Assembly (NCBI RefSeq): GCF_037042905.1
Contig: NC_087249.1
Span: 15,872,001 to 15,936,000, forward strand
Source: Lytechinus pictus
Lineage: Eukaryota
DNA: 64,000 bases
Direction of reading: 5' to 3'
This document shows positions 42,201 through 58,695 of this stretch, one piece after another. A program made the position numbers and the translations under genes. Numbering within the stretch: position 1 is the first letter of the stretch; every line of letters begins with the position of its first letter. A model generated the notes under the pieces. That model searched no databases. It saw only the letters and a list, made by a program, of their open reading frames with translations, and had not been told where the DNA came from.

Positions 42201-45200
42201 TATACCTTAATCATGAAGAACACGTATAACTTAGCTAGTAAAATTGATCTGAAGATATCTTTTACCTTTTTAAACTTGTTTCCTTGCCCAAAACACTTCG
42301 AAGGGTGCATTGCGCCCCACCCCACTCCCCCACACACGGAGGCCATCGTGACGATATTTGCTTTACACTGAGCTGTGATTTACATGAAATGGCTTAGGCT
42401 TGATTTTCATTTTGTTAATCATTGTCAAGCTTTGAAAAAGTGCGGAGAAACAAGTATTAAATGAAAAATGAAATGTAAACCCACTTCAAATGATAAAAAC
42501 TTAGTGAAAAAATGCTGGAGATGTCTGATATAAACTTTTGTTCAGATTCAGTTATGTCCTCAGATCCGGCTGGTACGAAAAGGGTAAAGGTCGTGCTTAC
42601 TAAGTGTTGAAATTTCAATTTGGGTGGCAAAATTGTTACAAAATGCTTGAATGTATCCGTTTTATTTCAATTGACTAAAATTGCAAGGGCAATGTATGAG
42701 AAATGTTTCGCAGGGTAAGTTTGATTTCGCCCTTTCCCCTTGACACAGCGTGAAAACGAGCATTTCTGCGCAAACAGATTTCTGCGAGCTTTACAAAAAC
42801 GGACAGTGCTCACTCAAGTGTAACATTCTGTCAAAACTTTTACTTTCATTTGATAGATAAGACCCAAAACCAAGATTATATGTGACAAAATTACCCACAT
42901 GTTGTATATTTTTTAATTCCCAGGGTTTTTTCAAAGTGTAAACTTTTTTTTGATACGCACTGTATAGTCCCTTTAATCTTTTTCTTTGCTGTATTTATTT
43001 GCATTAGTTTGCATAAAGCCTAAATTATTCAGGAATCCAAACCAACCTTGCAAGTATAAGTATATACTTTTCCTCAGTAAATGCCTATACTGATCTTATC
43101 ATCGCCCGGAGGGGGGGGGGGCAAAGTGTAAATTATAGTCGTCCATAGATTGAAAAATTACCTAAAACAACAACAAGAAATGGTTTCTTCGATCAATCTC
43201 AGGGTACTCTAAACGTTGGTAACGTTTCCCTGCCCATACAATTTCTCATATTATATTTTCATGACTAATACCCTTTTTAAGACCATGAGATCAATCGTAT
43301 TGAAAAGTTTACTTTTATACCCCTTATTTTGTCAATTGTATACCTTTAATGGACAAGCATGGTGTCAACTTCTAATGACGGTGGGAGCTCCCGTCTCCCG
43401 TACAAACTGTAACATTAAATGGGAGGTAAGATAATTGCCACCTCAGTAAAATATTATATTTTAAAATGTCCAAAGAATAATGGCTCCGTTTTATCCATAC
43501 AACCCTAAGAAGAATGGAATGGGGAGATGGGGAAAAACAGGAAAAGAAAATTAGTTGACAACCAACTTGCAAATATTAATATTTATTAAAGAAAAAAATC
43601 TTACTCTCGCATCCGATTTGGTCAGATAGAAGACCGTTTGCCATGCAATAAACTGTTGAATTCCCGACGAGATTATATCCAGTTGGGCAGCTAAAATCGC
43701 ATTCTGTATTCTCAGTAATTTTCGTTCCTGCCGGACATGCACTGTTAATATTGGTTAGTGGGGATATGTAGTCAACTTCACAGAGAACTGGGAGAAAAGT
43801 TTAACGAAATATGATTTAATATCGAAAAAAAATCTTACTTAACATGACTCTACTCAATCCATTCTTTGCTCAAGTTTTGAGCACAGATAGAATAGTACGA
43901 TTAAAATTAATTGACCCGTTAAAAAAGGGTTGCCATCAAACACATATCAAACATTCAAACAGGACTTTATTTTCAAATAATGAAACAAGCGTATTTGAGT
44001 CTTTCGCTTGATCTTTTGTAACGGTCCGATTTCTAGTTAAATTCGAAGGTACCGATGTTCAAGGCAAATGGATGAGGGAAAAACTGATCTTAATCTTACG
44101 TCAGGACGGGTCTGCTATAAAATGTGTAGATCTATTTATGAGGGGAAAAACAGTCGTTCCAGTTACACTTACTGGCAGAGGCGTCGATCCTGGGGGGGGG
44201 CAGGGGGGCGATCGCCCCACCAATGAAAATATTGGGGGGCAAACATATCGTTTTGCCCCCCCAATAATTCCGCATGTGTAAAAAATAAAATAAGATTGTA
44301 ATGTTACACATAAATCAGCAAGCGAGATCGAAATACACAATTCGTTCTTTATTTAAAATCATGCTCAAAATGTCCGCTTTTCAGATTGGAATATAAAAAT
44401 TTTCAGCTCGCGCTTCGCGCTCGCATCATTTCTGTAGCAAAAACCCATACTTTTCATGATTAATAGGTGAATAGAATGTCCCGTTTTCAGTTCTAAGCCT
44501 CAAAATAACTCGCGGTTCGATTTGCAATAATCTTTTGTTGGATATATATCTTGTTCTTAATTAAAAACGTCCATTAATCTCAATTTTTTTCTGATCAAAA
44601 TATCATAATTTTCAGCTCGCGCTTCGCGCTCGCATCTATTGTTTTTTAGATACCCATCTTAATCATTGGTACCAAAAATGCATAGAATATCAAGCTTACA
44701 GGTCAGAATATAAAGAAATTTCACCTCCGGCTCTCGGCACTTGCATTATCTGTGTAGTGAGATATGTATCCTCATGACAAACAGTCCTAAACAGGCACCT
44801 TTTTCCTGTTATCAGATCAGTATACAAAAAAATTTCAGCTCGCGCTTCGCGCTCGCATTAATTTGATGTTGAGATTTGTGNNNNNNNNNNNNNNNNNNNN
44901 NNNNNNNNNNNNNNNNNNNNNNNNNNNNNNNNNNNNNNNNNNNNNNNNNNNNNNNNNNNNNNNNNNNNNNNNNNNNNNNNNNNNNNNNNNNNNNNNNNNN
45001 NNNNNNNNNNNNNNNNNNNNNNNNNNNNNNNNTTGTGTGATCGAGCGCCTTTGGAAAGTTGATTAATGATTTTGCCCCCCCCCCCCCAATCTGAAAAATG
45101 GATCGACGCCCCTGCTTACTGGTACAATGCGGAAGGGATCCGGTAAGTTGTCCACCAACTCCACATCTTGCAATATCGTCACCTTCAAGAAGATATCCCT

Positions 45201-48200
45201 CAGCACATCCAAACCTACACTCAGTCGGCCAATCAACATTAGATTTCGAGTCACATGATCCGTTCAGAGGCAAAGTATATTCCCAAACAGGACATATGAT
45301 AACTGGAAATAATACGAAAGAAATGAGCATATCCAATTATTTGAATGTTCTCTTATGGTTAGGAGCATTGTAGATGGGCAATTCCATAAAATCAGGGGCG
45401 TAAATTAAAACGTCGATTCATCTTTAAATGCAGTCAAAGTGCTTAAATTGCCCAATTTTGCATTCTAAAAATGCAAACTTTCTTGTGTGTTCGCTCCGCT
45501 CCCGCGCTCAATGTAATCTTACAGGATTTTGGCCATGACAAATCCCTACGTTTAGCATATTGCAAATATTATATCCCCTTCATCATGAAAGTATGGTTAT
45601 AATACGTCCATGTACAAATTGTAAGATATCAATAACTTTTAAATATAGTTTGATCATAAACCAACTAAAACATCCTTTGAATACACTAGCGTGAATGTAG
45701 GGGGTCATACTAACCTAGCATCTTTGTGGATGCGGGGGATAATCTGTACAAAAAAATATCGGTATACTTTATACTTCCAGTTAAGAGTAGGCCTACGATG
45801 AGTTACTGATAACATTGACCAAATTAATACCGTTAATGAACACAGAGGCAAGTTAGGACAGCAATATTTCCCTCACACTTTACAGTTTTATCTGTTTATA
45901 GGAGGGTTTAAATCACATTAATCCCATAACAATCTAATAAATATTTCAAACATGATTTTTCCCCAATATTTTTATTGTTGCATCACCTCCCAATATAATC
46001 TTTAACCACATTTAACCGGTGAGCAAATGAGTTTTCATTGAACAAAATATGGACCGTTCAATACCTATTTGCTCTTTTTATTTCCTTTTCCTTTTCTTAT
46101 GTAGTTTAATTTATTGATAATCTACCTTGATCATATTCTGTAATTATATGCACACCATTTTGAAAGACTGAAGCAATTTTTCAAGGCTCGCCGACTTCGC
46201 TCACTCGAAGCATTTCTTCCATCATTACACACCCCTTGAAAGACGATTTTGGTCATCATTCTTTATTCCAACATTGAGAATTTGCTCGCTCGCATATTTA
46301 CTGTAATTCATATTTTATATCTTAACAAATCCATTACAATATAGCCTTCGAACAAATTCATGATAGGCTTTTAACTGAAAGATATAATGTACACATTTAC
46401 AGTATGTACACATACGTATACACTGCCCGTGATGTGATAATTACCCCGTGATCACTTAAAAGAGGTTTTTGGGCATCATTTTGTCTTCCAACTACTGAAA
46501 ATCTGCTCGCTCGCTTCGCTCGCATATTGATATTAATTGTAAATCATTGCTTTATAGCTATAACAAATCTTTATAGGCTTTTAACTGAAATATGGGGGAA
46601 TTATGTATATGGTCATAAACCACCGTATACACGTACACAGCCCTTGGTGTGGGGGTGTCCCCAAAATTTTGAATTTTCAGATCAATATATTGCTATCATC
46701 CACTGCCCCCACCCCCCCCCCCCCCCCCCCACTGCTCGGACCGGATTTACGCTAGTGCATTATGTACGTCCGACCACCTATATGTGGGACCTTCATGATT
46801 TTTTTTTTTGTCTCTGATTTCTTGTTCTTTTGACAGTCTGTAATTCCCCTAAATGACCATGACCTGGTCAGTTTATGAAGTGAAGTAAAACTTGAGAAAA
46901 ATGGGGGTCGGACGTACAAAAAAGTTGATAACTTTATGGGACTGCCCTCGTACATGTTGAGTTCGTTATGCTCTTGTACTTCAATCAAGATATTTTATTT
47001 CAACATACGTATGGCGGCCTAACCAATAAAAAACAAATCATTCCGCTCATCAAATTATACATATTTGCAAAAATAGAGAGGGAATAGAAGCGTGACCGCC
47101 TTACTAGTACAACTTTGGAAGTGATCCGTTGAACCGTCCACCCAGACCACACATTACAATATCACCCCCTTCAAGGACATATCCCGGTGCACACTCAAAC
47201 CTACATATCGTTGGCCAATCAACACTTGAGTTTGAGTCACATGACCCGTTCAGAGGCGGAATATAGTTCCCAACAGGACAGGGAATGACTAGAAATATTT
47301 CAAAAGAAATTGTATATCCAATTATTCAATCGCTATGGTTTAGAGTCATTCCGACTCTAAACCAAAGCGATGATCTGGGCGATTTAGTTCCGATCGACCG
47401 ATACTTGAAAACAAGTATTGCTTTCTAACAATATCTAGTGAGTCAAATAAAAACTAAAACACCCACGTTGATTAGCCACAGCCCAAAACGGGACTTCGTC
47501 GTTTACTGGCAACGTAGCATACCAATCATGACGTTCTTTCCAAAAATTCGTATGGAAAATTGATGCGACTTACTTATCAAAGTACATAATCCTTAAAAAG
47601 AGTCTCAGATTCTTAACTCACTATTCAACATTTTGATCGACTTATAATGTGATTGTGTCTACCAACTAAAAACAAAGTTCATATCCACAATATTTATATT
47701 ACAAAAAATGCGTGGCTGTCTTACTGTTACAATCTGGAATTGATCCGTTGAGCTCTCCACTAAGTCCACACCTTGCAGTATCGCTTCCTTCAAAGAGATA
47801 CCCTTCAGCACATTCAAACCTGCACTCCAATGACCAATCAACACTAGAGTTCGAGTCACACGACCCAGTCAGCGGCCAAGTATAGTCCCAAACAGGACAG
47901 ATGATAACTGGCAAGAAGAAATGGCAGCATATCCACTCATGTTAACGTAGTGTTTAAAGTGGTAATTTCACTTTGTTCTGATTTAAAAAAAAATTATTTT
48001 GGTTCTTAAAAATGGGCTAAACATTAGGCTTGTAGTGTAAAATACCATCCCAAAAGTTTCAAGGGATCATAATATCTACACGAACAATTTTTAAATCTTG
48101 GATATGTAAACCAAAGTTTGAAAATAATTTAGGGTTGGTTTCAATGACTATACAGCGAATCTGTGCACTTCAACGCATTAACTCTAGATTAACACAGCAC

Positions 48201-51200
48201 GAACTACATACAGCGTGTACAAGATATACATTGAATGTCTAGTGCAGCTAACAATAGTGTGGTATAGGAGATACACACAGCAGAAGGCAGTCGACGCAGC
48301 CAACGGACTCTTTGGAATTGGAGAAAATTGGTCATACGCCAAACCCGTCTACGAGACGGTTCTCAAAATCAGGCTTATAAATTGCCTCTTGTATCTAAAT
48401 CATAGTTTTTCATCCTATATTGTGGTCTGCTTCAGGGTTTTTGAGGACAAATACAGGCATTCATACACATGTTTCGTCTTAGTTTGAGAATTTTTTAAAT
48501 CGTCTGCTCACAAAGTGAAACGATCCCTTTAATTGACTGACACAAAATATTTGTTTCATGAAAATCTGGCACGCCAAATAACACCAGGACCACTTTCGAT
48601 TAACTCAAGCCCAAAAATATGGCTTACTTACTGACAGTAATAATGTAACCTACCAATTACGTAGTCCTGAAATACGTAAAACTTGAAAAGGGCATCGTTT
48701 CCATTAATGTCAATGCCAAAGTGACATGGTATCCACTTTGAACTACATCTGCTAAAGTCTTGATTCCCGAAAGGTCCATATTCTTAATTATTCAGCATTG
48801 CTATCAAATTTTGGTACAAAATCATACACAATAATAACAATGCTCATCTTTACAATTTCATATAGATATAAAAAAAAAAAGCGTCACTGTCTTACTAGTA
48901 CAACTTGGAAGTGATCCGTTGAACTGTCCACCCAAACCACACATTACAGTATCGTCCCCTTCAAGGAGATATCCCTCTGCACACTCAAACCTACATTCCG
49001 TCGACCAATCAACACTGGAGTTCGAGTCACATGACCCGTTCAGAGGTGTAGTGTAATTTGGAACAGGACAGGTAATGACTGAAAATATCCCCCAAAAGAA
49101 ATTAAAGAATATGCAATCATTTAAACTTTGCGTTAGAGAATAATATTAATAGAGTCACTTTTACACGTGAGTTTAAAATAAAACATCTTTTTCTCAACAG
49201 ATCCAAAATCCAGATATATATAGAGTACGAGTCACTTTGAATAGCATTATTGGATGTTCTGAAACAGGACTCGATTATGTGCTGATAACGGAACTGTTCT
49301 ATCGCATATGCTTATGGTATAAAGATTGAATAAGTATTATTTCAAAAGATGCAGAAGCAAGCCGGAGTTCCGTCAGTAGCCCCAGTTCAAACTTCTCAGA
49401 GTGGCGAATTTAAGCGCACAAATTATATCTATACCCTCCCGCCTATCTTTACAATATTCCTTTTGACTAGAGAAGTATAAGCGTGTCTTCCTTACTATTA
49501 CAATATGGAAGTGATACGTTGAGCTCTCCACTAAGTCCTGAATATGAGAAATTGACAATGTAACATATCAATGGTGCAGCCCACAAATATGTAGATGAAG
49601 AGGAGCATTATTTTCATAAATGTCACTGCCGAATAAACGTGACACCCACTTTGAATTACATCAGCCAAAGACATAATTCCCGAAATAGTCCAGTTTTCTC
49701 AATAATGCAGAATTTCAATCACATTTTGATACAAAAGATTTTCCAATAACAAAAAAGTCACTTTGCAGTATCCCTATTGATAAGTGAATAAAAAGAAGGG
49801 GAACTGGCTTACTGTTACAACGCGGAAGAGATCCATTAAGTTGCCTGTCATCTCCACAACTTGCTGTATCGTCACCATCAAGGAGATATCCCTCGGCACA
49901 TTCAAACCTACACTCAGTCGACCAATCAACATTAGAGTTCGAGTCACATGATCCGTTCAGAGGCCACGTATACTCCCAAACAGGACAGGTAATAACTGGA
50001 AATATTACAAACAAAGTAAGCATATCCTATTATTCAAACATTGTCTTCTGGTTCGGGAGCATGACCATGATGATAGAATCGCTTGTAAACGTTGAGTTCG
50101 TTCTGCTCTTGCACGTGAAACAAGACGTATGTTATTCAAAAAGGAGCCAAATCCACTTAGAGCATTTTTCAGTGAATCAAATATATTATACATGTTTTCT
50201 GATGATTAAACATTTGAAAAAGGAAAGCATTCAGAACATTTCTCTATCTTGTCTAAAGAAGCACAATTGTTTAATGCGATATGGTGCATTTGATTTCCTT
50301 CTCATAAGATACAGCCATATTTACCTTTAAAAACCATTTTGGTTAGAATTGGATTATATGTTTCCTTTTCAATTAAGGTATTTGTATGCCTTCCCAATAA
50401 TAATAATAATAATAATAACAAAGACAAATACATCTGTTCATATTCACATAACACAAATACATTCGTGATTGCCTTACTTGTGCAAGTCGGAAGAGATCTG
50501 TTAAGTCGTCCACTCTCTCCGCACCTTGCATTATTGTCACCTTCAAGGATATACCCTTCATCACATTCAAACCTACACTCAGTCGACCAATCAACACTAG
50601 AGTTCGAGTCACATGATCCGTTCAGAGGCCAGGTATATTCCCAAACAGGACAGGTAATGACTGACAATGTTTCAAAATAAATGAGAATATCAAATTATTC
50701 AAACTTTGGCTAATGGTTCGGGAGCATGATAGAGTCGTTTATACATGTTGAGTTCGTTCTGCTCTTGCCCTTCAAACAAGACATTTATTTCAACAGATCT
50801 GTCTATGCCTAGGAAATAAATTTATTCGGCTCCCCCTCACATTGTTCATATTTGCAAAAATAAATAAATAACATAAATAAATAAACAAATAAAATACAAG
50901 CGTTGACTGCCTTACTGGTACAACTCGGAAGAGATCCGTTAAATTGTCCGTCATCTCCACACCTTGTAGCGTGGTCACCTTCAAGGAGATATCCCTCTGC
51001 ACATTCAAACCTACACTCAGTCGACCAATCAACACTGGAGTTTGAATCACATGACCCATTCAGAGGCGTGTTATAGTTAGGGACAGAACAGGTAATAACT
51101 GAAAATATCGCAAAAGAAATCGTTGCATATCCAATATAAAAATCTTGCGTTATAAAGTTAAGAAACATGAGTGTCGGTTATGCATAGGCGATCGTTCCGC

Positions 51201-53793
51201 ACTTGCATTTGAAACCGGATATATATCTTAACAGATCTGAAAATTAAATCAGGACCCGTTGATTAATGACAAGGATTTTATATCGTGTAGCCTTGTAATA
51301 TACTGCTTAAAAATATAGTTTTAAGAGATATTAATGCAAAAGAGCGCCACGTCATCCACTTAGTACATCGTCTAAATATCTAATCCTCAAACGGTCCCAG
51401 ATTCTCAACCAAAAATTCAGTCTTATTATCAACTTTTGATGCGTATGCCTACCCTCCAATAGCGAGGTCATCTTTGCAATGATCTTATCTATCAGAAAAT
51501 ACAAGTGCGAGTGCCTACTTGTACAAGTTGGGAGGGATCCATTGAGCCGTCCGTCATCCCCACATCGTGCAATATCGTCCCCTTCCAGACGATATCCCTC
51601 GGTACATTCAAACCTACACTCAGTCGGCCAATCAACACTAGAGTTCGAGTCACATGATCCGTTCAGAGGCCACGTATACTCCCAAACAGGACAGGTAATA
51701 ACTGGAAATATATTTTAAACAAAGTAAGCATATCCTATTATTCAAACGTTTTATTTTGGTTCGGGAGCATGATCATGATGATAGAATCGCTCATAAACGT
51801 TGAGTTCGTTCTGCTCTTGCACGTCAAACAAGACGTATGTTATTGAAAAAGGAGCTAAATCCACTTAGAGCATTTTTCAGTGAATCAAATCTATTATACA
51901 TGTTTTCTGATGTTTAAACAATTAGAATTGAAAAAGGAAAGCATTCAGAACATTACTCTATCTTGTCTAAAGAAGCACAATTGTTTAATGCGATATGGTG
52001 CATTTGATTTCCTTCTCATAAGATGCAGCCATATTTACCTTTAAAAACAATTTTGGTTAGAATTGGATTGGGTTTCCTTTTCAATTAAGGCCTTTGTAAG
52101 CCTTCCCAATAATAATAGTAATAATGATAACAAAGAAAAAAAAATCTGTTCATTTTCACATATCAAAAATACATTCGTGATTGCCGTACTTGTGCAAGTC
52201 GGAAGAGATCTGTTAAGTCGTCCACTCTCTCCGCACCTTGCATTATTGTCACCTTCAATGATATACCCTTCATCACATTCAAACCTACACTCAGTCGACC
52301 AATCAACACTAGAGTTCGAGTCACATGATCCGTTCAGAGGCCAGCTATATTCCCAAACAGGACAGGTAATGACTGACAATGTTTCAAAATAAATGAGAAT
52401 ATCAAATTATTCAAACTTTGGCTAATGGTTCGGGAGAATGATAGAGTCGCTTATTCATGTTGAGTTCGTTCTGCTCTTGCCCTTCAAACAAGACATTTAT
52501 TTCAACAGATCTGTCTATGCCTAGGAAATAAATTTATTCGGCTCACCCTCACATTGTTCATATTTGCAAAAATAAATAAATAACATAAATAAATAAACAA
52601 ATAAAATACAAGCGTGAGTGCCTTACTGGTACAACTCGGAAGAGATCCGTTAAATTGTCCGTCATCTCCACACCTTGTAGCGAGGTCACCTTCAAGGAGA
52701 TATCCCTCCGCACATTCAAACCTACACTCAGTCGACCAATCAAAACTGGAGTTTGAGTCACATGACCCATTCAGAGGCGTGTTATAGTTAGGGACAGAAC
52801 AGGTAATAACTGAAAATATCGCAAAAGAAATTGTTGCATATCCAATATTAAAATCTTGCGTTATAAAGTTAAGAAACATGAGTGTCGGTTATGCATACGC
52901 GATCGTTCCGCACTTGCATTTTAAACCGGATATATATCTCAACAGATCTGAAAATTAAATAAGGACTCGTTGATTAATGACAAGGATTTTAAATCGTGTA
53001 GCCTTGTAATATACTGCTTACGATTATAGTTTTAAGAGATATTAATGCAAAAGCGCGCCACGTCATCCACTTAGAACATCGTCTGAATATTTAAACCTCA
53101 AACGGTCCCAGATTCTCAACCAAAAATTCAGCCTTATTATCAACTTTTGATGCGTATGCCTACCCTCCAATAGCGAGGTCATCTTTGCAATGTTCTTATC
53201 TATCAGAAAATTCCTTCTTACAAGCGTGAGTGCCTTACTGGTACAACTCGGAAGAGATCCGTTAAATTGTCCGTCATCTCCACACCTTGTAGCGAGGTCA
53301 CCTTCAAGGAGATATCCCTCTGCACATTCAAACCTACACTCAGTCGACCAATCAACACTGGAGTTTGAGTCACATGACCCATTCAGAGGCGTATTATAGT
53401 TAGGGACAGAACAGGTAATAACTGAAAATATCGCAAAAGAAATTGTTGCATTTCCAATATCAAAATATTGCGTTATATAGTTATTAAAGAAACATGAGTG
53501 TCGGTTATGCATACGCGATTGTTCCGCACTTGCATTTAAAACCGGATATATATCTCAACAGATCTGAAAGTTAAAGCAGGACTCGTTGATTAATGACAAG
53601 GATTTTTCATATCTTATAGACTTGTGATCACTAGCGTACCTACGGGGGGGGGGCAGGGGGGGCACTCTCCCCCCCTAACGAGTCACAACCCATGCAAAAA
53701 CGTATCTTTGCCCCCCCTGATGGGCTTGAAAAACCTTTTTTGCCCCCCCTGACGAGCTTTAAGACCTTCAATGCCCCCTGACGAGCTTGAAGA

Positions 53794-53828
<35 letters not shown>

Positions 53829-53873
53829 TGTCAATTTTTATCTGGTACGAAATCCTTTATTTGTGACCGAAGA

Positions 53874-53910
<37 letters not shown>

Positions 53911-56900
53911 TGTCAATTTTTTTGGCGGACGGTTTTGCCCCCCCCTGTGGAAAATCCTAGGTACGCCACTGCTTGTGATATACAAATTAAAAATATGGTT
54001 TTAAGATATATTAATGCCAAAGTGCGCAATGTCATCCAATTAGAACATCGTCTGAATATAAATCCTCAAACGGTCCCAGATTCTCAACCAAAAATTCAGA
54101 CTTATTATCAACTTTTGATGCGTATGCTTACCCTCCAGTAGCGAGGTTCATCTGTGCAATGTTCTTATCTATCAGAAAATACAAGTGCGAGTGCCTTACT
54201 TGTACAAGTTGGGAGGGATCCATTGAGTTGTCCATCATCCCCAATCTTGCAATATCGTCCCCTTCGAGTCGATATCCCTCTGCACATTCAAATGTACATT
54301 CCGTCGACCAATCAACAATTGAGTCCGAGTCACACGATCCGTTTACAGGCGAAGAATAGTTCCAAACAGGACACGCAATGGCTGAAAATATTCCCAAAAA
54401 AATTGTAGCAGATCTAATCATTCGCTTTTTAATGTTCGATCCTTCTGTAAGGGCACATGCAAAATTTATTTCTTTTAACACTAGAAAGCTAAATAGGCTC
54501 ACGGTCTCCTTGAATAACCTTGGCCAAGATCTTGAAATAAACTCTACATGTTACTGACAACAATTGTCATATTTCAACCAACTTGTTCGTGGGTTGAAGA
54601 AAAAAATATGAGAGTCGTTGTATTTTTTTGTAATTTCTGTTATTTCTTACTCTTCGATTGTCCTGCATCACAATTAAGCCACCGGTTTTTTTTCCATTAT
54701 GCCTATATGACCCAAATTCATCTCACACCACCTTTCTGACATCAATTTTCTAATTAGCCTTGTGTTAATTATATATCATATTTATATTACTTTATGTTTG
54801 TGTGCACAAAATACCGTCCATGTCAGATTATTGGAAAGGTCACGGCAACGCGACAGGACCTTTCATTAGTAAGGTGCCCTGGATGTACAGCCTAACGTAC
54901 TCCGACTTCTTCTTTGCATTGACGCCTCCAGGCGACAATGCTCTGTTGTTGTTCCGTATTCCTATTCCGCCTTCTTCTTCTTTGCATTGACGCCTACAGG
55001 CGACAATGCTCTGTTGTTGTTCCGTATTCCTATTCCGTCGTCTTCTCCTTCTGTCTTCTTCTGTCTGCTTCTTCCAAAAAATCCCAATTCGTTTAACACG
55101 TAGTTTTTGTTAGCTCTGCCCTGGCTCCGTCCCTCGTCCAAATTTATCCAAATTTGAGAGATATGTTGTCCAGCATCATTAGTTGTGCACCTCGTCTTCC
55201 ATTTTCCAAAATCACTCATGCATGACCATCCAGGCGCCATTTTGTAAATTTCAAGTCCATTTGCATACCATTCCTAATCCCGTCCTAACTCCCTTATCCT
55301 GCATGCTACATACTTCTAACAAATTGCAATAGATTGGTTAAGAGTTGCTCGTTCATATAAAAACTACGATTGCCCTTCAAAATGCCGTCTATTTGCCCTA
55401 AATTCAAATCCAAGATAGTTTACGTTCAAAATGTTCATATTTATTGAAATGCAAAGTAGCAAAATCGTAAAATAACCATAACTTCCTTGTTTTTATTCAT
55501 TTCCGTCTCATATTTTCATGGTTCACTAATGGTACCATCCTTCACAATTCAACAAAAATTTTACGCATCAGTGACCATTCAATTTACAAATAGTGCCCTC
55601 TATTGCAAAGTCAACAAATAGTAAAATGACAATAACTTTGTTGTTATCATTCATTTCGGTTTCATATTTTTAGGGCTGGTTTATGGTATCATCCTTCACA
55701 ATTCAACAAATTTTTACGCATCAGTGACCATTAAATTTACAAATAGCGCCCTCTATTGCAAAGTCAACAAATAGTAAAATGACAATAACTTTGTTATCAT
55801 TCATTTCGGTCTTGTATTTTCAGGGCTGGCTTATGATCATTCTTCATAATCCATATGCTTTTTACGCATCAGTAACCATTAAATTTTCAAATAGCGCCCT
55901 CTATTGCAAAGTCAACAAATAGTAAAATGACAATTACTTTGTTGTTATCATTCATTTCTGTCTCATATTTTGAGGGTATGCTAATTGTATCATTCCTCGT
56001 ATAAATCCATATGTTTTTACGCATCAGTGACCATTACCTTTAAGAAATAGCGCCCTCTATTGAAAAGTTGAAAATAGTAAAATGGCCATAACTTCCTAGT
56101 TTTCAATCATTATGGTCTCATATATTCAGAGTTTGTTAGAGGTACCGTCCCTGATAATTCGAACGTTTTCTTACGCATCAGTGACCATTACCTTAATAAA
56201 TAGCGCCCTCTATTGCAATAGTGAAATTGCTCTAACTTTCTTGTTTTTATACATTTTGGTGTCATATTTTCAGGGTTTGCCTATGGTATCATCCCTCATA
56301 TAGAAAATGGTTTTAACACATCAGTGGTCATTACCTTAATACATAGTGCCCTCTATTGAAAAGTTGAAAATATTAAAATGACAATAACTTCCTTGTTTTT
56401 ATTCATTTGGGTCTGATATTTTTAGGGTTTGCTAATGAAAACATTCTTCATGATTCATTTTTTTACGCATCAGTGACCATTACCTTTAGAAATAGCGCCC
56501 TCTATTGAAAAGTCTCAAAATTGAAAATTGCCCTACCTTCATCGTTTTCAACCATTTTGGTCTCATGTTCTCAGGGTTCGCTTATGGTAACATCTTTCAT
56601 AATTCACTGGTTCGTTACGCATCAGTGACCATTACCTTAATAAATAGCGCCCTCTATTGCAAAGTCGAAAAATAGTAACATGGCTCTAACTTTCTTGTTT
56701 TTATAGATTTGTGTCATATTTTCAGGGTTTGCTTATGGTATCATCCCTAAAATGCCAAATGTTTTTGTATGCATCAGTGACCATAACTTTTAGAAATAGC
56801 GCCCTCTATTGCAAAGTCGGAAAATAGTAAAATTGCCATAACTTTGTTATCATTCATTTCGGTCTTGTATTTTCAGGGCTGGCTTATGATCATTCTTCAT

Positions 56901-58695
56901 AATCCATATGCTTTTTACGCATCAGTAACCATTAAATTTTCAAATAGCGCCCTCTAATATTTTGAAAATGTAAATCATCTATAGTTTTCTCTCTACCTCC
57001 TTCTGTTTCTTGCCCTCTATTAAATCACAGACGTCAATGCATGTACATCGTTCTGATACGATTGCAGTTCTAGTCTTCTTCTTCTTCGTCTTCTTCCCTG
57101 AGTACAGACCACCTTCTGGTATATATTCAGGACTATGAGGTGACCTAACAAGTGCAATACACTGGGTGGACACCCTACTCTTTGACGAACATTTGCGTCC
57201 TTTCCTATCTAAGCGACCGGGCTACGCCGCCTCCTTTACCATGAAAAATTGGTCACTGTCACCCCCCCCCCTCCCATTATCAACGAATTGCATGAAGAAC
57301 GCATAATGGAGATCAACTCTCTTTTTTATTCATTTCAATACTTACTAATTAGTATTTTACAAGAGTGGATACACCCTTAGACCTTGAAAATACGATTTTT
57401 TTTCAATCTCTTTAAAGCTAACACCACTATTATTAAATAATTTCGAAAAAATTTAACACATATGTAAACTAATGAAGAATGTTCTGAGACTCTCTCGCTT
57501 GCCTTTATCGGATTTTGGTTTCATATTGAAAGCGCTTTTTTTTTCTTACCAAATCCTACAATCAGTAAATTTCATTATTTACTTACTTTCACATCCAATC
57601 TCGTCAGATAACAAACCATTCGACATGCATTGCACAGATGAATTCCCAACGAGATTGTACCCAGTAGGACAGCTAAATTCACATCGTGTATTCTCGGGTA
57701 TGGTTGTTCCTGAGGGACACAGACTGTTGGTATTATTCAATGGTGAACAGTAGTCAACCGGACAAAATACATCTGTATAATTAGATGGATAGATCATTAC
57801 AAATTGAGTACATCGTAACTTAAATAAAAGCATGCTGAAATGTTGAAAAGAGTCATATACATGTAATACAAAAAATATAATATATATATCTGCCCTTTTC
57901 CAAAATAACATACAATGTTCAATTTTTCGCTTTCAAGCAAAATAATTTGGCAAAAAAATTACAACAGTAATTGATTACTTCTGTCAAGCCTTGAGTGATA
58001 AGTGGCGAATGAACGAGCACACAAATACCACAATGTCACTCATAGAAAGAATAAGAGCTACAGATGCTATCAAACTTTTTTTATGACCCCCCCCCCCAAA
58101 AAAAAAATTAATAATAATAATAATAATCATAATAATAAATAAAGAATAAAATAAAATAACAACCCACACACAACGTCTCGAGGCAATTTTGATTTTATAT
58201 TCGGCTTTGGTAACCCTGATTTGATTTGTTTTATTTCGACAAGGTGCAATATACACACAATACAATACAAAGAATAGCTGAGCTCAAGAATTAAGATCGA
58301 TTTGAAACGTTGATGTTTTATTATTATCCATGACGTTTAGCTGAAAAAGATTTTTAATTTTTTCGAACACAAATAGGTGGCAAACATTTTAAAGAGGTTG
58401 TGATCATGTCATTTGTAAATGGACACACCCGCCGCTCAACCAACAGCGGTCAGTGCATGTTAACAATCGATTTCAACGATGGTAAAGTATCTAAACGCCT
58501 TCCTGGCATAGCGATATACTGTGAAATTCATATTATTCAAAATTGCAAGGACACGTAAAGGAAAGAATTTCAAGCTTTTCAGTGCTTACCTTGGGGAGGG
58601 GTAGGAACAATGCCCCGTCGTCGCCGCCGCCTTGCCGAAGCCTCTGAACCATGATGATAACAATAACACAAACAACCGTGATTAATCTTCGTCAT
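27070..58695 (-). CDS. Multi-exon gene (about 27 exons): Sushi/CCP x14 - EGF/EB-like x4 - SEA - EGF_CA - TM - Tyr-motif tail, type I membrane glycoprotein
   Basis: Exons are bounded by AG/GT sites with compatible phases and translate into recognisable domains in a sensible order. Three or four indels interrupt the frame in this assembly. Confidence 0.88.
28092..28663. mobile_element. CCCGGG-ended MITE nested in L2
   Basis: Inverted ends ACTTCCATTGACG..GATACAATGCGCGACC / GGTCGCGCATGGTATCCGTCAATGTAAGT. It interrupts AFVSS|HLDYC. Confidence 0.75.
28793..29750 (+). mobile_element. Helentron/HINE-like element with internal ~162-bp tandem array
   Basis: Subterminal IR GTCTCACCTGCAT / ATGCAGGTGAGAC, (GGC)n microsatellite, about 5 repeat units, T-rich ends. 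Confidence 0.7.
30317..31365. mobile_element. TIR element with 3-bp TSD (Academ-like)
   Basis: GCC|CAGTCAGT...ACTGACTG|GCC. Removing it restores L2 AVDRGEEAVLILLD. Confidence 0.75.
32398..32680. mobile_element. MITE ending 6 nt from an exon donor
   Basis: Imperfect inverted ends GGAAAGAACGG / CCGTTTCCGGTAGGG; internal CACACTGTG repeats. Confidence 0.5.
32687..32842 (-). CDS. Cytoplasmic exon
   Basis: LSYRKESSQSDVYYLYPGSSGNSSIKTGYSHRSRNPVSTNRRSVSSAIYNKA|gtaagt; 156 nt, phase 0-0. Confidence 0.75.
33212..33287 (-). CDS. Possible cytoplasmic exon (frame uncertain)
   Basis: acag|VDSNITESAPPAFRNLTLADSKHTH g|gtatag; 76 nt, so out of phase with the next exon. Confidence 0.4.
33526..33713 (-). CDS. 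Transmembrane exon
   Basis: VALIAGLVPGLGIVLVVIFTCACVTFF followed by basic stop-transfer RSQRKK; CAGCAG tandem acceptor. Confidence 0.88.
33951..34531. mobile_element. Kolobok-like MITE
   Basis: TTAA|AGGTCAAGTCCACCCCA...TGGGGTGGACTTGTCCT|TTAA. A degraded relative lies at about 18290-18755. Confidence 0.8.
34835..34873 (-). CDS. 39-nt stalk micro-exon
   Basis: tctttttcttcccctag|ASPSDPDETRSDI|gtgag; phase 1-1. Confidence 0.75.
35536..35694 (-). CDS. Calcium-binding EGF exon
   Basis: EITEVDECADGSHDCDTNALCINTDPGLGFGCLCNEGYDDLYPASLPGRYCFL; 159 nt. Confidence 0.9.
36000..37545 (-). mobile_element. 5'-truncated L2-clade LINE with (AAT)n tail
   Basis: LQKCISDIRNRMTVNKLKLNDTKTEF, LVFKSLNKQAPQYL and GDRTF..WNKLP; 3' stem GCGCTTT..AAAGCGC; MITE inserted at about 36399-36942. 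Confidence 0.88.
37868..38099 (-). CDS. SEA domain exon 2
   Basis: IPRVLKARGVGGVITSVVLGYFNGSLGVDSAV...SLRINMASLNVA; phase 0-1; GS-x-x-V motif. Confidence 0.85.
39249..39376 (-). CDS. SEA domain exon 1
   Basis: ASRLLRISYILLAINGVQVNFDAAYRDPQSAEYIAGAEVIRYV (F...L/Y.DP.S.EY pattern); phase 1-0. Confidence 0.85.
40015..40131 (-). CDS. EGF/EB-like exon
   Basis: ESCSQSCVLEQERCVISSCRCRTTWFRREIGNGVSRCSK; ccag|..|gtgag; 117 nt. Confidence 0.85.
40633..40734 (-). CDS. EGF/EB-like exon
   Basis: DLRCNDVVCEDTQTCFQGVCVCQDGRAPVNGVCE; 102 nt, phase 1-1. Confidence 0.85.
41066..41188 (-). CDS. EGF exon
   Basis: GTPTIACQIDSCMNGGTCNQEPTTFTCTCPSGFTGMMCQN; 123 nt, phase 1-1. Confidence 0.9.
41743..41871 (-). 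CDS. EGF-like exon
   Basis: INKCSTLPCSADANSFCVNRLGTFQCSCYEGYENSIENPQCS; 129 nt, phase 1-1. Confidence 0.9.
41992..42962. mobile_element. Tc1/mariner-like MITE
   Basis: TA|CCGTGCGTATAAAAAAAAAGTTTACACTTTGAAAAA...GTGTAAACTTTTTTTTGATACGCACTG|TA. Confidence 0.8.
43605..43787 (-). CDS. CCP exon 14 (divergent type, like CCP exon 1)
   Basis: LCEVDYISPLTNINSACPAGTKITENTECDFSCPTGYNLVGNSTVYCMANGLLSDQIGCE; 183 nt; AG/GT. Confidence 0.9.
44176..45114. mobile_element. hAT-like non-autonomous element on an exon-intron junction
   Basis: TIR CAG(A/G)GGCGTCGATCC; 8-bp TSD CTTACTGG; spans the N gap. Confidence 0.85.
44881..45032. other. Assembly gap (N run)
   Basis: 152 Ns. Confidence 1.
45120..45302 (-). 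CDS. CCP exon 13
   Basis: IICPVWEYTLPLNGSCDSKSNVDWPTECRFGCAEGYLLEGDDIARCGVGGQLTGSLPHCT; 183 nt. Confidence 0.9.
45376..46947. mobile_element. GGGC-ended TIR element (Sola2-like)
   Basis: GGGCAATTCCATAAA / TTTATGGGACTGCCC. It interrupts intron sequence that is contiguous in sister repeats; no clear TSD. Confidence 0.55.
47105..47288 (-). CDS. CCP exon 12 (184 nt, +1 frameshift near 47115)
   Basis: IPCPVGNYIPPLNGSCDSNSSVDWPTICRFECAPGYVLEGGDIVMCGLGGRFNGSLP, then an extra A (CCAAAGT versus CCAAGT). Confidence 0.8.
47725..47907 (-). CDS. CCP exon 11
   Basis: IICPVWDYTWPLTGSCDSNSSVDWSLECRFECAEGYLFEGSDTARCGLSGELNGSIPDCN; 183 nt. Confidence 0.9.
47958..48528. mobile_element. Kolobok-like MITE
   Basis: TTAA TSDs; imperfect TIRs AG..TTTCACTTTGT / ACAAAGTGAAA..CT. 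Confidence 0.65.
48896..49078 (-). CDS. CCP exon 10
   Basis: ITCPVPNYTTPLNGSCDSNSSVDWSTECRFECAEGYLLEGDDTVMCGLGGQFNGSLPSCT; 183 nt; not in the ORF track. Confidence 0.9.
49496..49537 (-). pseudogene. Truncated CCP exon remnant (3' 42 nt only)
   Basis: LSGELNVSLPYCN followed by GTAAG, homologous to the end of CCP exon 11. Confidence 0.7.
49813..49995 (-). CDS. CCP exon 9
   Basis: ITCPVWEYTWPLNGSCDSNSNVDWSTECRFECAEGYLLDGDDTASCGDDRQLNGSLPRCN; 183 nt. Confidence 0.9.
50478..50660 (-). CDS. CCP exon 8
   Basis: ITCPVWEYTWPLNGSC...CGESGRLNRSLPTCT; 183 nt; AG/GT. Confidence 0.9.
50916..51098 (-). CDS. CCP exon 7
   Basis: ITCSVPNYNTPLNGSC...DHATRCGDDGQFNGSLPSCT; 183 nt; AG/GT. Confidence 0.9.
51519..51701 (-). 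CDS. CCP exon 6 (chimeric)
   Basis: ITCPVWEYTWPLNGSCDSNSSVDWPTECRFECTEGYRLEGDDIARCGDDGRLNGSLPTCT; 183 nt; donor GTAGGC. Confidence 0.88.
52190..52372 (-). CDS. CCP exon 5
   Basis: ITCPVWEYSWPLNGSC...CGESGRLNRSLPTCT; 183 nt; donor GTACGG. Confidence 0.88.
52627..52809 (-). CDS. CCP exon 4
   Basis: Near-identical to CCP exons 3 and 7; 183 nt; AG/GT. Confidence 0.9.
53239..53421 (-). CDS. CCP exon 3
   Basis: ITCSVPNYNTPLNGSCDSNSSVDWSTECRFECAEGYLLEGDLATRCGDDGQFNGSLPSCT; 183 nt; AG/GT. Confidence 0.9.
53629..53971. mobile_element. hAT-like MITE
   Basis: 8-bp TSD CTTGTGAT; TIR CACTAGCGTACCTA / TAGGTACGCCACTG. Confidence 0.85.
54200..54381 (-). CDS. CCP exon 2 (182 nt, 1-bp deletion frameshift near 54243)
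   Basis: IACPVWNYSSPVNGSCDSDSIVDWSTECTFECAEGYRLEGDDIAR, then shifts. Reads TTGGGG where sister exons have TGTGGGG. Confidence 0.8.
54905..57076 (+). mobile_element. Helitron/Helentron-like element with ~150-bp x10 satellite
   Basis: IR GCATTGACG / CGTCAATGC, 3' hairpin and CTAG end, duplicated 68-bp head, array at about 55450-56960. Confidence 0.7.
57587..57772 (-). CDS. CCP/Sushi exon 1 (divergent type, 7 Cys)
   Basis: DVFCPVDYCSPLNNTNSLCPSGTTIPENTRCEFSCPTGYNLVGNSSVQCMSNGLLSDEIGCE; acag|..|gtaag; 186 nt, phase 1-1. Confidence 0.9.
58590..58695 (-). CDS. Putative first coding exon (leader, ...GSEASARRRRRRGIVPTPPQ)
   Basis: ATG at 58695 and strong donor CAAG|GTAAGC. It ends in phase 1, in frame with the first CCP exon. 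The hydrophobic stretch LITVVCVIVIIMV lies in the +1 frame. Confidence 0.65.

Follow-up and report, generated by a model that had tools for sequence, protein, structure and literature searches.

A hybrid Sushi exon at the joint of a tandem duplication in a Sushi-array gene of the sea urchin Lytechinus pictus

The window analyzed here is a 64,000-nucleotide stretch of the Lytechinus pictus genome (RefSeq assembly GCF_037042905.1, contig NC_087249.1, positions 15,872,001 to 15,936,000), and all positions below are counted from its first base. The minus strand of the window carries a gene with an array of exons encoding Sushi modules, also called complement control protein (CCP) modules. One exon of this array, exon C, is a hybrid, with a 5' half of the type of exon a and a 3' half of the type of exon h. 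The comparisons below confirmed C as the junction of a head-to-tail duplication of ~1.71 kb (a-X1-Y1 followed by C-X2-Y2 in ascending coordinates). The hybrid exon is real, but it is a textbook outcome of unequal recombination. Its origin was probably an in-register, unequal homologous exchange between h and a that made the ~1.71-kb duplication with C as its hybrid joint, with the further exon Y3, the insertion of a miniature inverted-repeat transposable element (MITE) and gene conversion coming later.

Exon C Joins Halves of Two Exon Types

Exon borders were set by the GT/AG rule. The positions that an initial annotation of this DNA had given for exons a, C and h were correct, each exon having an AG acceptor and a GT donor on the minus strand, and exons a and C being 183 nt long. 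The same annotation had proposed that C shares its 5' half and upstream intron with a, and its 3' half and downstream intron with h. Windowed identity and a comparison of exon halves both bore this out. In 40-nt windows, sequence to the left of ~51590 (the intron at 51100-51518 and the 3' half of C) was 85-100% h-like and 30-78% a-like, and sequence to the right of ~51600 as far as 52189, including the whole intron, was 88-100% a-like and 0-78% h-like. By halves, identity between C and a was 97% in the 5' half and 72% in the 3' half; between C and h it was 79% and 91%, respectively. The introns upstream of C and a (51702-52189 and 49996-50477) shared 93.3% identity, with 32 mismatches in 480 nt, and the intron downstream of C was 91% identical to its h counterpart. 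The last ~26 nt of intron i1 (TACAAGTGCGAGTGCC-TAC) were of the h-flank type.

Self-BLAST revealed one long diagonal in the region, at an offset of ~1.71 kb. Positions 49824-51711 aligned with 51530-53431 at 92.4% identity over 1905 columns, and the offset stayed at ~1706-1711, so that the two copies lie colinear and head-to-tail at a constant distance, as in a tandem duplication.

In a three-way alignment of a, C and h, 51601 was the last a-type site and 51590 the first of h type. The exchange falls inside the shared GAGGGATATC (E-G-Y), directly after the canonical Cys2. A breakpoint test on the exons only, with 38 informative sites, gave 19 a-type and 0 h-type sites on one side of the breakpoint vs. 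2 a-type and 17 h-type sites on the other. The maximum chi-square, 30.8, lay between 51590 and 51601 (permutation p <= 1e-5; Fisher 1.2e-8). The parentage switch at the joint is single, one-way and in homologous register, and the length and frame of the exon are kept.

Sushi Domain of the Hybrid Exon

Against the Pfam Sushi profile (PF00084; gathering cut-off 20.7 bits), C scored highest of the five exons scanned: C 32.7 bits, Y1 31.7, X1 29.7, a 28.6, and e1 24.9. The full protein scored 107.9 bits over seven stretches. Cysteines at residues 3, 32, 46, and 59 of C have the canonical framework spacing, and an extra pair sits at residues 16 and 28. In CCP modules the first cysteine is disulfide-bonded to the third and the second to the fourth. 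If C is paired in this way, both bridges cross the joint, and the two halves had to be compatible. The conserved Trp between Cys3 and Cys4 is absent from C, where the segment CGDDGRLNGSLPTC has Leu or Phe instead; Trp residues are confined to the first half of the exon. Because the Trp-less Cys3-Cys4 segment is common to all modules of the array (an atypical Sushi subtype), it is not a result of the hybrid formation.

Occurrence of the Hybrid Module in Transcripts and Independent Contigs

When 1.84 billion representative proteins were scanned by HMMER for exon C, one near-identical protein was found (P0001), which with seven siblings makes up RefSeq XP_063955958-65. C was found at 100% identity in all eight of these isoforms. 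The only differences among the isoforms are entire 61-aa Sushi cassettes (X1, X2, Y1 or e4 in or out), and Y3 and e2 were skipped in every one. Splicing carries C into mRNA like any other Sushi module. With C in register, in frame, a valid Sushi domain and present in every RefSeq isoform, the earlier claim that recombination made a new module sequence in addition to extra copies was upheld.

The joint was also recovered in Logan contigs, which are short (80-140 nt in exons) and in whose joint tables joints derived from transposable elements (TEs) are crowded. Contigs of 80 nt covered 51537-51616 with one mismatch each in two runs that came from different studies and had the same species label. 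Their right-hand arm is 15 nt, below the 31-nt rule, yet it includes the three a-type diagnostic sites 51601, 51613, and 51614. An 86-nt contig with four mismatches covered 51549-51632 in a run with a second species label (L. variegatus). Among the joints listed, which come from short contigs, none skipped ~1.71 kb, and the splice joints C-Y1 and X2-C were not seen. The sequencing run labeled X2 (not the exon of that name) behaved as RNA: its contigs ended exactly at the exon borders 48896/49078, 50478, 51098, 52627, and 54381, and a 519-nt contig from it had 373 nt of upstream sequence spliced to the h acceptor (54381). In the raw RNA run X17, cover was confined to the MITE-like TE.

Hybrid Modules in a Sister Species and Polarity

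The comparison with L. variegatus was made with protein models only. Proteins XP_041465278-84 consist of a signal peptide and an N-type CCP, followed by four pairs of a C-type and a Y-type module and then an e3-like module. All four C-type modules were 90-93% identical to C, with a 5' half that was a/X-like (91-94%) and a 3' half that was h/C-like (89-96%). Their presence means that the hybrid is not private to the L. pictus assembly. On these protein sequences the hybrid either predates the species split or arises recurrently, with amplification in L. variegatus, and the event is neither recent nor private. The e3-like module of L. variegatus has an a/X-type 5' half, a further sign of half-module exchange.

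Nothing in the array closely matched the 5' half of h or the 3' half of a (identity of 81-83% at most), as expected of unduplicated ends. A search of the L. pictus genome found no external donor for the odd 5' half of h. This half keeps WNY and ECTF, as do the W-type modules of S. purpuratus XP_030832897; in all other Lytechinus modules the WNY position reads WEY, WGY, WDY, PNY or GNY and the ECTF position ECRF, ECMF or ICRF. Overall identity to the S. purpuratus outgroup was not discriminating, as the 5' halves of h and C both gave 72% against its first W module in a hand count, and in this comparison only the two diagnostic residues (WNY, ECTF) favor h as the older lineage. They modestly support a history in which h would be an old, positionally conserved first module and C derived.

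Additional Rearrangements in the Array

The initial annotation had written the history of the array as a-X-Y-h becoming a-X-Y-[h/a]-X-Y-h. This formula is incomplete, as it leaves out Y3 (53239-53421) and the 612-bp Y2/Y3 duplication. The 612-bp unit of this second tandem duplication is Y with its intron, and it is the source of Y3. At its joint (53211-53238), intron-i sequence is followed by an 8-nt filler (TTCCTTCT, 53211-53218) and then by a Y-type exon flank (53219-53238).

The intron between Y3 and h contains a MITE-like repeat of 343 bp, with an 8-bp target duplication (CTTGTGAT) at 53621-53628 and 53972-53979, imperfect terminal inverted repeats, and two long poly-T runs. More than 40 genomic copies with 80-96% identity were found across chromosomes. 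In RNA run X17 the repeat was transcribed, or carried within transcripts.

Exon a is also mosaic: together with the upstream intron, its 5' half resembles X, whereas its 3' half resembles Y, and the split falls between 49934 and 49896 (Fisher 2.8e-5, uncorrected). The pattern is suggestive of an older conversion or exchange that affected that same portion of the module. Weaker mosaic signals were found in e1, e3, and e4.

Origin of the Hybrid Exon

We infer homologous unequal exchange as the mechanism, with a and h parental and C derived. The paralogous exons h (first in gene order) and a (fourth) would have mispaired in register, with strand exchange where the module is most conserved. This would yield a head-to-tail duplication of ~1.71 kb that runs from the 3' half of h to the 5' half of a and takes in Y, X, and the three introns around them. 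Its single joint would be C, made of the 5' half of a and the 3' half of h. An exchange in register would leave C with its length, its phase, and all of its cysteines. Later, a 612-bp duplication of Y and its intron would have given rise to Y3, the MITE would have inserted into the Y3-h intron, and gene conversion probably re-homogenized the X..Y part between the two units.

Several findings weigh against this account, or against its simplest form. The exchange interval is 10 identical bases, a short stretch by the standards of classical homologous recombination, and overall identity between a and h is today ~79%. Judged by divergence, the two copies are not equally old throughout. Inter-unit divergence was uneven, at 6.7% in the a-X intron, 1.8% in X..Y, and 5.2% in intron i (chi-square p = 2e-4; p = 0.02 for the introns alone), and the exon halves diverged by 2% between a and C and by 9% between h and C. 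The intron copies clustered as ((i1,i2),i3), with 95.2% identity between i1 and i2 vs. 91.2% to i3. A duplication of Y3 after the 1.71-kb duplication would make i2 and i3 the closest pair, and the greater closeness of i1 and i2 misfits this order unless extra conversion is added. The L. variegatus module at the position of h is C-type, so that either h was converted in that species or the polarity is more complex. The longest contig or read seen across the joint was 86 nt, and the copy number is that of the assembly.

A simple two-step history, with the 1.71-kb duplication followed by the Y duplication, is contradicted by the intron tree. The uneven divergence and the intron tree together require later gene conversion or extra unequal exchanges, and conversion between the units seems likely from the divergence pattern. 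Of the one-step history first put forward for the array, the duplication with its hybrid joint stands; the single step does not, given the 612-bp duplication, the intron tree, and the uneven divergence. The term unequal crossover fits the in-register joint at a 1.71-kb repeat, but sequence alone does not separate it from a replication-based duplication guided by microhomology.

Such a replication-based or end-joining route, in which template switching, fork stalling and template switching (FoSTeS), microhomology-mediated break-induced replication (MMBIR) or alternative end joining (alt-EJ) at microhomology gave the same product in place of meiotic unequal crossing-over, is the alternative we take most seriously, while regarding it as unlikely. 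The 10-base exchange interval suits it, as does the 8-nt filler at the neighboring 612-bp joint, which is typical of non-homologous or template-switch joints. Both joints, however, are in exact homologous register (exon to exon with 183 nt kept, and donor flank to donor flank), which microhomology alone rarely yields, and the half-exon mosaicism of several other exons in the array fits homology-driven exchange. It is very improbable that C is an older exon with one half overwritten by gene conversion from a or h, and with no duplication joint. Conversion-like patches do occur in the array, for example in a, where a Y-like 3' half lies between X-like flanks, and the uneven inter-unit divergence also speaks for conversion. 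A conversion tract would, however, have the original sequence on both sides, and the switch in C is one-way: the a-like side runs on through the 490-nt intron, X2, Y2, and beyond, and the h-like side through the 420-nt intron. No return to non-a-like sequence was found upstream of C up to 52189.

An assembly artifact, with haplotypes or collapsed or expanded repeats joined in tandem, has hardly any probability left. Copy divergence of 2-7% is within the allelic range of sea urchins, for which allelic divergence is 4-5%, and the RefSeq models skip Y3, both as an artifact might have it. Stacked haplotypes would put h beside a, however, and would yield no in-frame h/a hybrid, and the joint is present in independent contigs, including those from the run of the second species, as well as in proteins of the independent L. 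variegatus assembly. The region has no gap or N. The 811-Mb assembly contained no second copy of the locus and no haplotig with a shorter a-X-Y-h arrangement, all non-TE matches lying within the array. The scenario of two haplotypes assembled in tandem, which the initial annotation had named as its own refutation, is thus contradicted by the hybrid exon itself together with the independent contigs and the L. variegatus proteins. Exchange between h and a in register, followed by conversion, is the account retained here.

Gene Structure and Exon Array

RefSeq names the gene 'SVEP1-like'. Judging from the layout of the L. variegatus orthologue (signal peptide, N-type CCP, 183-nt phase 1-1 Sushi exons, EGF, transmembrane segment, and Tyr-rich tail), the locus belongs to a gene that encodes a single-pass membrane protein. 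Upstream of the array, at ~57588-57887, there is an N-type CCP exon, and past the array the gene encodes a further CCP, EGF domains, a transmembrane segment, and a Tyr-rich tail. An nhmmer search with a profile built from the obvious copies gave 12 matches of exon size, which all lie on the minus strand within 45.1-54.4 kb. Ten of the 12 exons were 183 nt long and of phase 1-1, the exceptions being e2 (184 nt) and h (182 nt). As the exons are symmetric (phase 1-1) and 183 nt long, their duplication, deletion or skipping all keep the frame. The features of the array are listed in Table 1.

Table 1. Exons, introns, and other features of the Sushi array, in window coordinates.
Feature	Positions	Strand	Description
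e1	45120-45302	-	Sushi exon
e2	47105-47288	-	184 nt
e3	47725-47907	-	array exon
e4	48896-49078	-	array exon
exon a	49813-49995	-	183 nt, phase 1-1 Sushi; 3'-most putative parent in gene order; apparent donor of the 5' half of C
intron upstream of a (X1-a)	49996-50477	-	copy-1 partner of 51702-52189
X1	50478-50660	-	Sushi; 98.9% identical to X2
Y1	50916-51098	-	Sushi; 97.8% identical to Y2
intron i1	51099-51518	-	downstream of C in gene order
hybrid exon C	51519-51701	-	183 nt, in frame; 5' half of a type, 3' half of h type
exchange interval	51590-51601	-	first h-type site 51590, last a-type site 51601
intron upstream of C (X2-C)	51702-52189	-	copy 2 of the a-X intron
X2	52190-52372	-	Sushi
Y2	52627-52809	-	Sushi
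intron i2	52810-53238	-	body homologous to i1 and i3
Y3	53239-53421	-	third Y copy; 97-100% to Y2
MITE-like dispersed repeat	53629-53971	.	within intron i3 only
exon h	54200-54381	-	182 nt; first W-type Sushi exon of the array; putative parent of the 3' half of C

Between 45033 and 64000 the window contains no N runs. An N run of 152 bases occupies 44881-45032, 88 nt from exon e1. Upstream of exon h, the intron that separates it from the N-type CCP exon (~57.6 kb) contains a ~150-bp tandem repeat array at 55430-56960. The a-e4 intron holds a relic of a Sushi exon 3' end at 49472-49545, which is 66-68% identical to the 68-nt exon-end family and nearest to the end of e3; it is a remnant of an earlier rearrangement. 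Exon e2 has an extra A near its 3' end (..CTTCCAAAGTTG..), and its module ends in ..LPKLY, not ..LPxC. None of the eight RefSeq isoforms includes e2, so that it probably represents a dead cassette.

Exon h is one base short at 54243/54244, in the Cys codon of ..IARCGDD.. (AAGAT-TGGGG vs. ACGATGTGGGG in the sister exons). The peptide that the initial annotation quoted for h, YRLEGDDIAR..LPTCT, hid this missing base behind its two dots, and the frame of the 182-nt exon is broken in this assembly. The RefSeq coding sequence (CDS) starts at an internal ATG within h, in a shifted frame (MCRGIS...); it is because of the missing base that it begins inside h, and the models consequently have no signal peptide. 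Contigs from two independent runs both stopped exactly at 54244, and this shared end suggests a variable site or an assembly error.

Comparison With Known Systems

In human CR1 (CD35), as in the L. pictus gene, an intragenic tandem duplication in an array of CCP exons, or short consensus repeat (SCR) exons, has changed the module number of a membrane receptor. The long homologous repeat of CR1 measures roughly 18-20 kb and holds seven CCP modules, whereas the L. pictus unit measures 1.7 kb and holds three, and its joint could be narrowed to 10 nt within an exon. CR1 size alleles gain a long homologous repeat (PMC2188435; PMC11662384), which they can also lose, and the alleles arise by unequal exchange (PMC11662384). 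The sea-urchin gene is not known to be polymorphic in populations or to have a complement function.

The CFH::CFHR1 and CFH::CFHR3 hybrids arise by non-allelic homologous recombination between paralogous CCP segments and encode two-parent hybrid proteins (PMC6404389). C resembles them as a hybrid from recombining paralogous CCP-encoding segments, but the CFH::CFHR hybrids join neighboring genes, whereas C is hybrid within one gene and one module. Breakpoints of CFH::CFHR hybrids usually lie in introns or segmental duplications, and whole SCRs are swapped. Lepore-type fusions are in-frame hybrid coding sequences from the unequal exchange of tandem paralogues, and haptoglobin Hp2 is an internal exon duplication. 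These belong to other protein families and are human polymorphisms with known reciprocal products, whereas no reciprocal product is known for C. Patthy's rule describes exon shuffling of phase 1-1 modules, a feature that the array shares, with isoforms that vary by whole exons. Classical exon shuffling, however, moves whole exons via intronic recombination, and the exchange point of C is inside an exon.

Significance for Repeated-Module Genes

Arrays of this kind call for caution in annotation. Near-identical exons (Y2/Y3) were dropped from the models, the RefSeq CDS start inside h was caused by a 1-nt frame gap, and exon counts of such arrays are untrustworthy without long reads.

A wider reading, which we regard as a long shot, makes the half-module, in place of the exon, the evolutionary unit and the array a standing generator of receptor diversity through repeated mid-exon exchanges and the combinatorial use of symmetric phase 1-1 cassettes. 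In-register exchanges within GTTGATTGG...GAATGTGC.GAGGGATATC would then bring the 5' and 3' halves of modules into new combinations, such as those seen in C, a, and the L. variegatus orthologue of e3, and individuals and species would carry different hybrid Sushi repertoires in a receptor bearing Tyr motifs.

A hybrid module is the expected behavior of CCP arrays and by itself opens no new question. What exon C offers is a clean, base-resolved case in which unequal exchange has done more than alter copy number in a repeated-module gene: two half-domains were fused into a new Sushi module, foldable and transcribed, which two sea-urchin species still carry.

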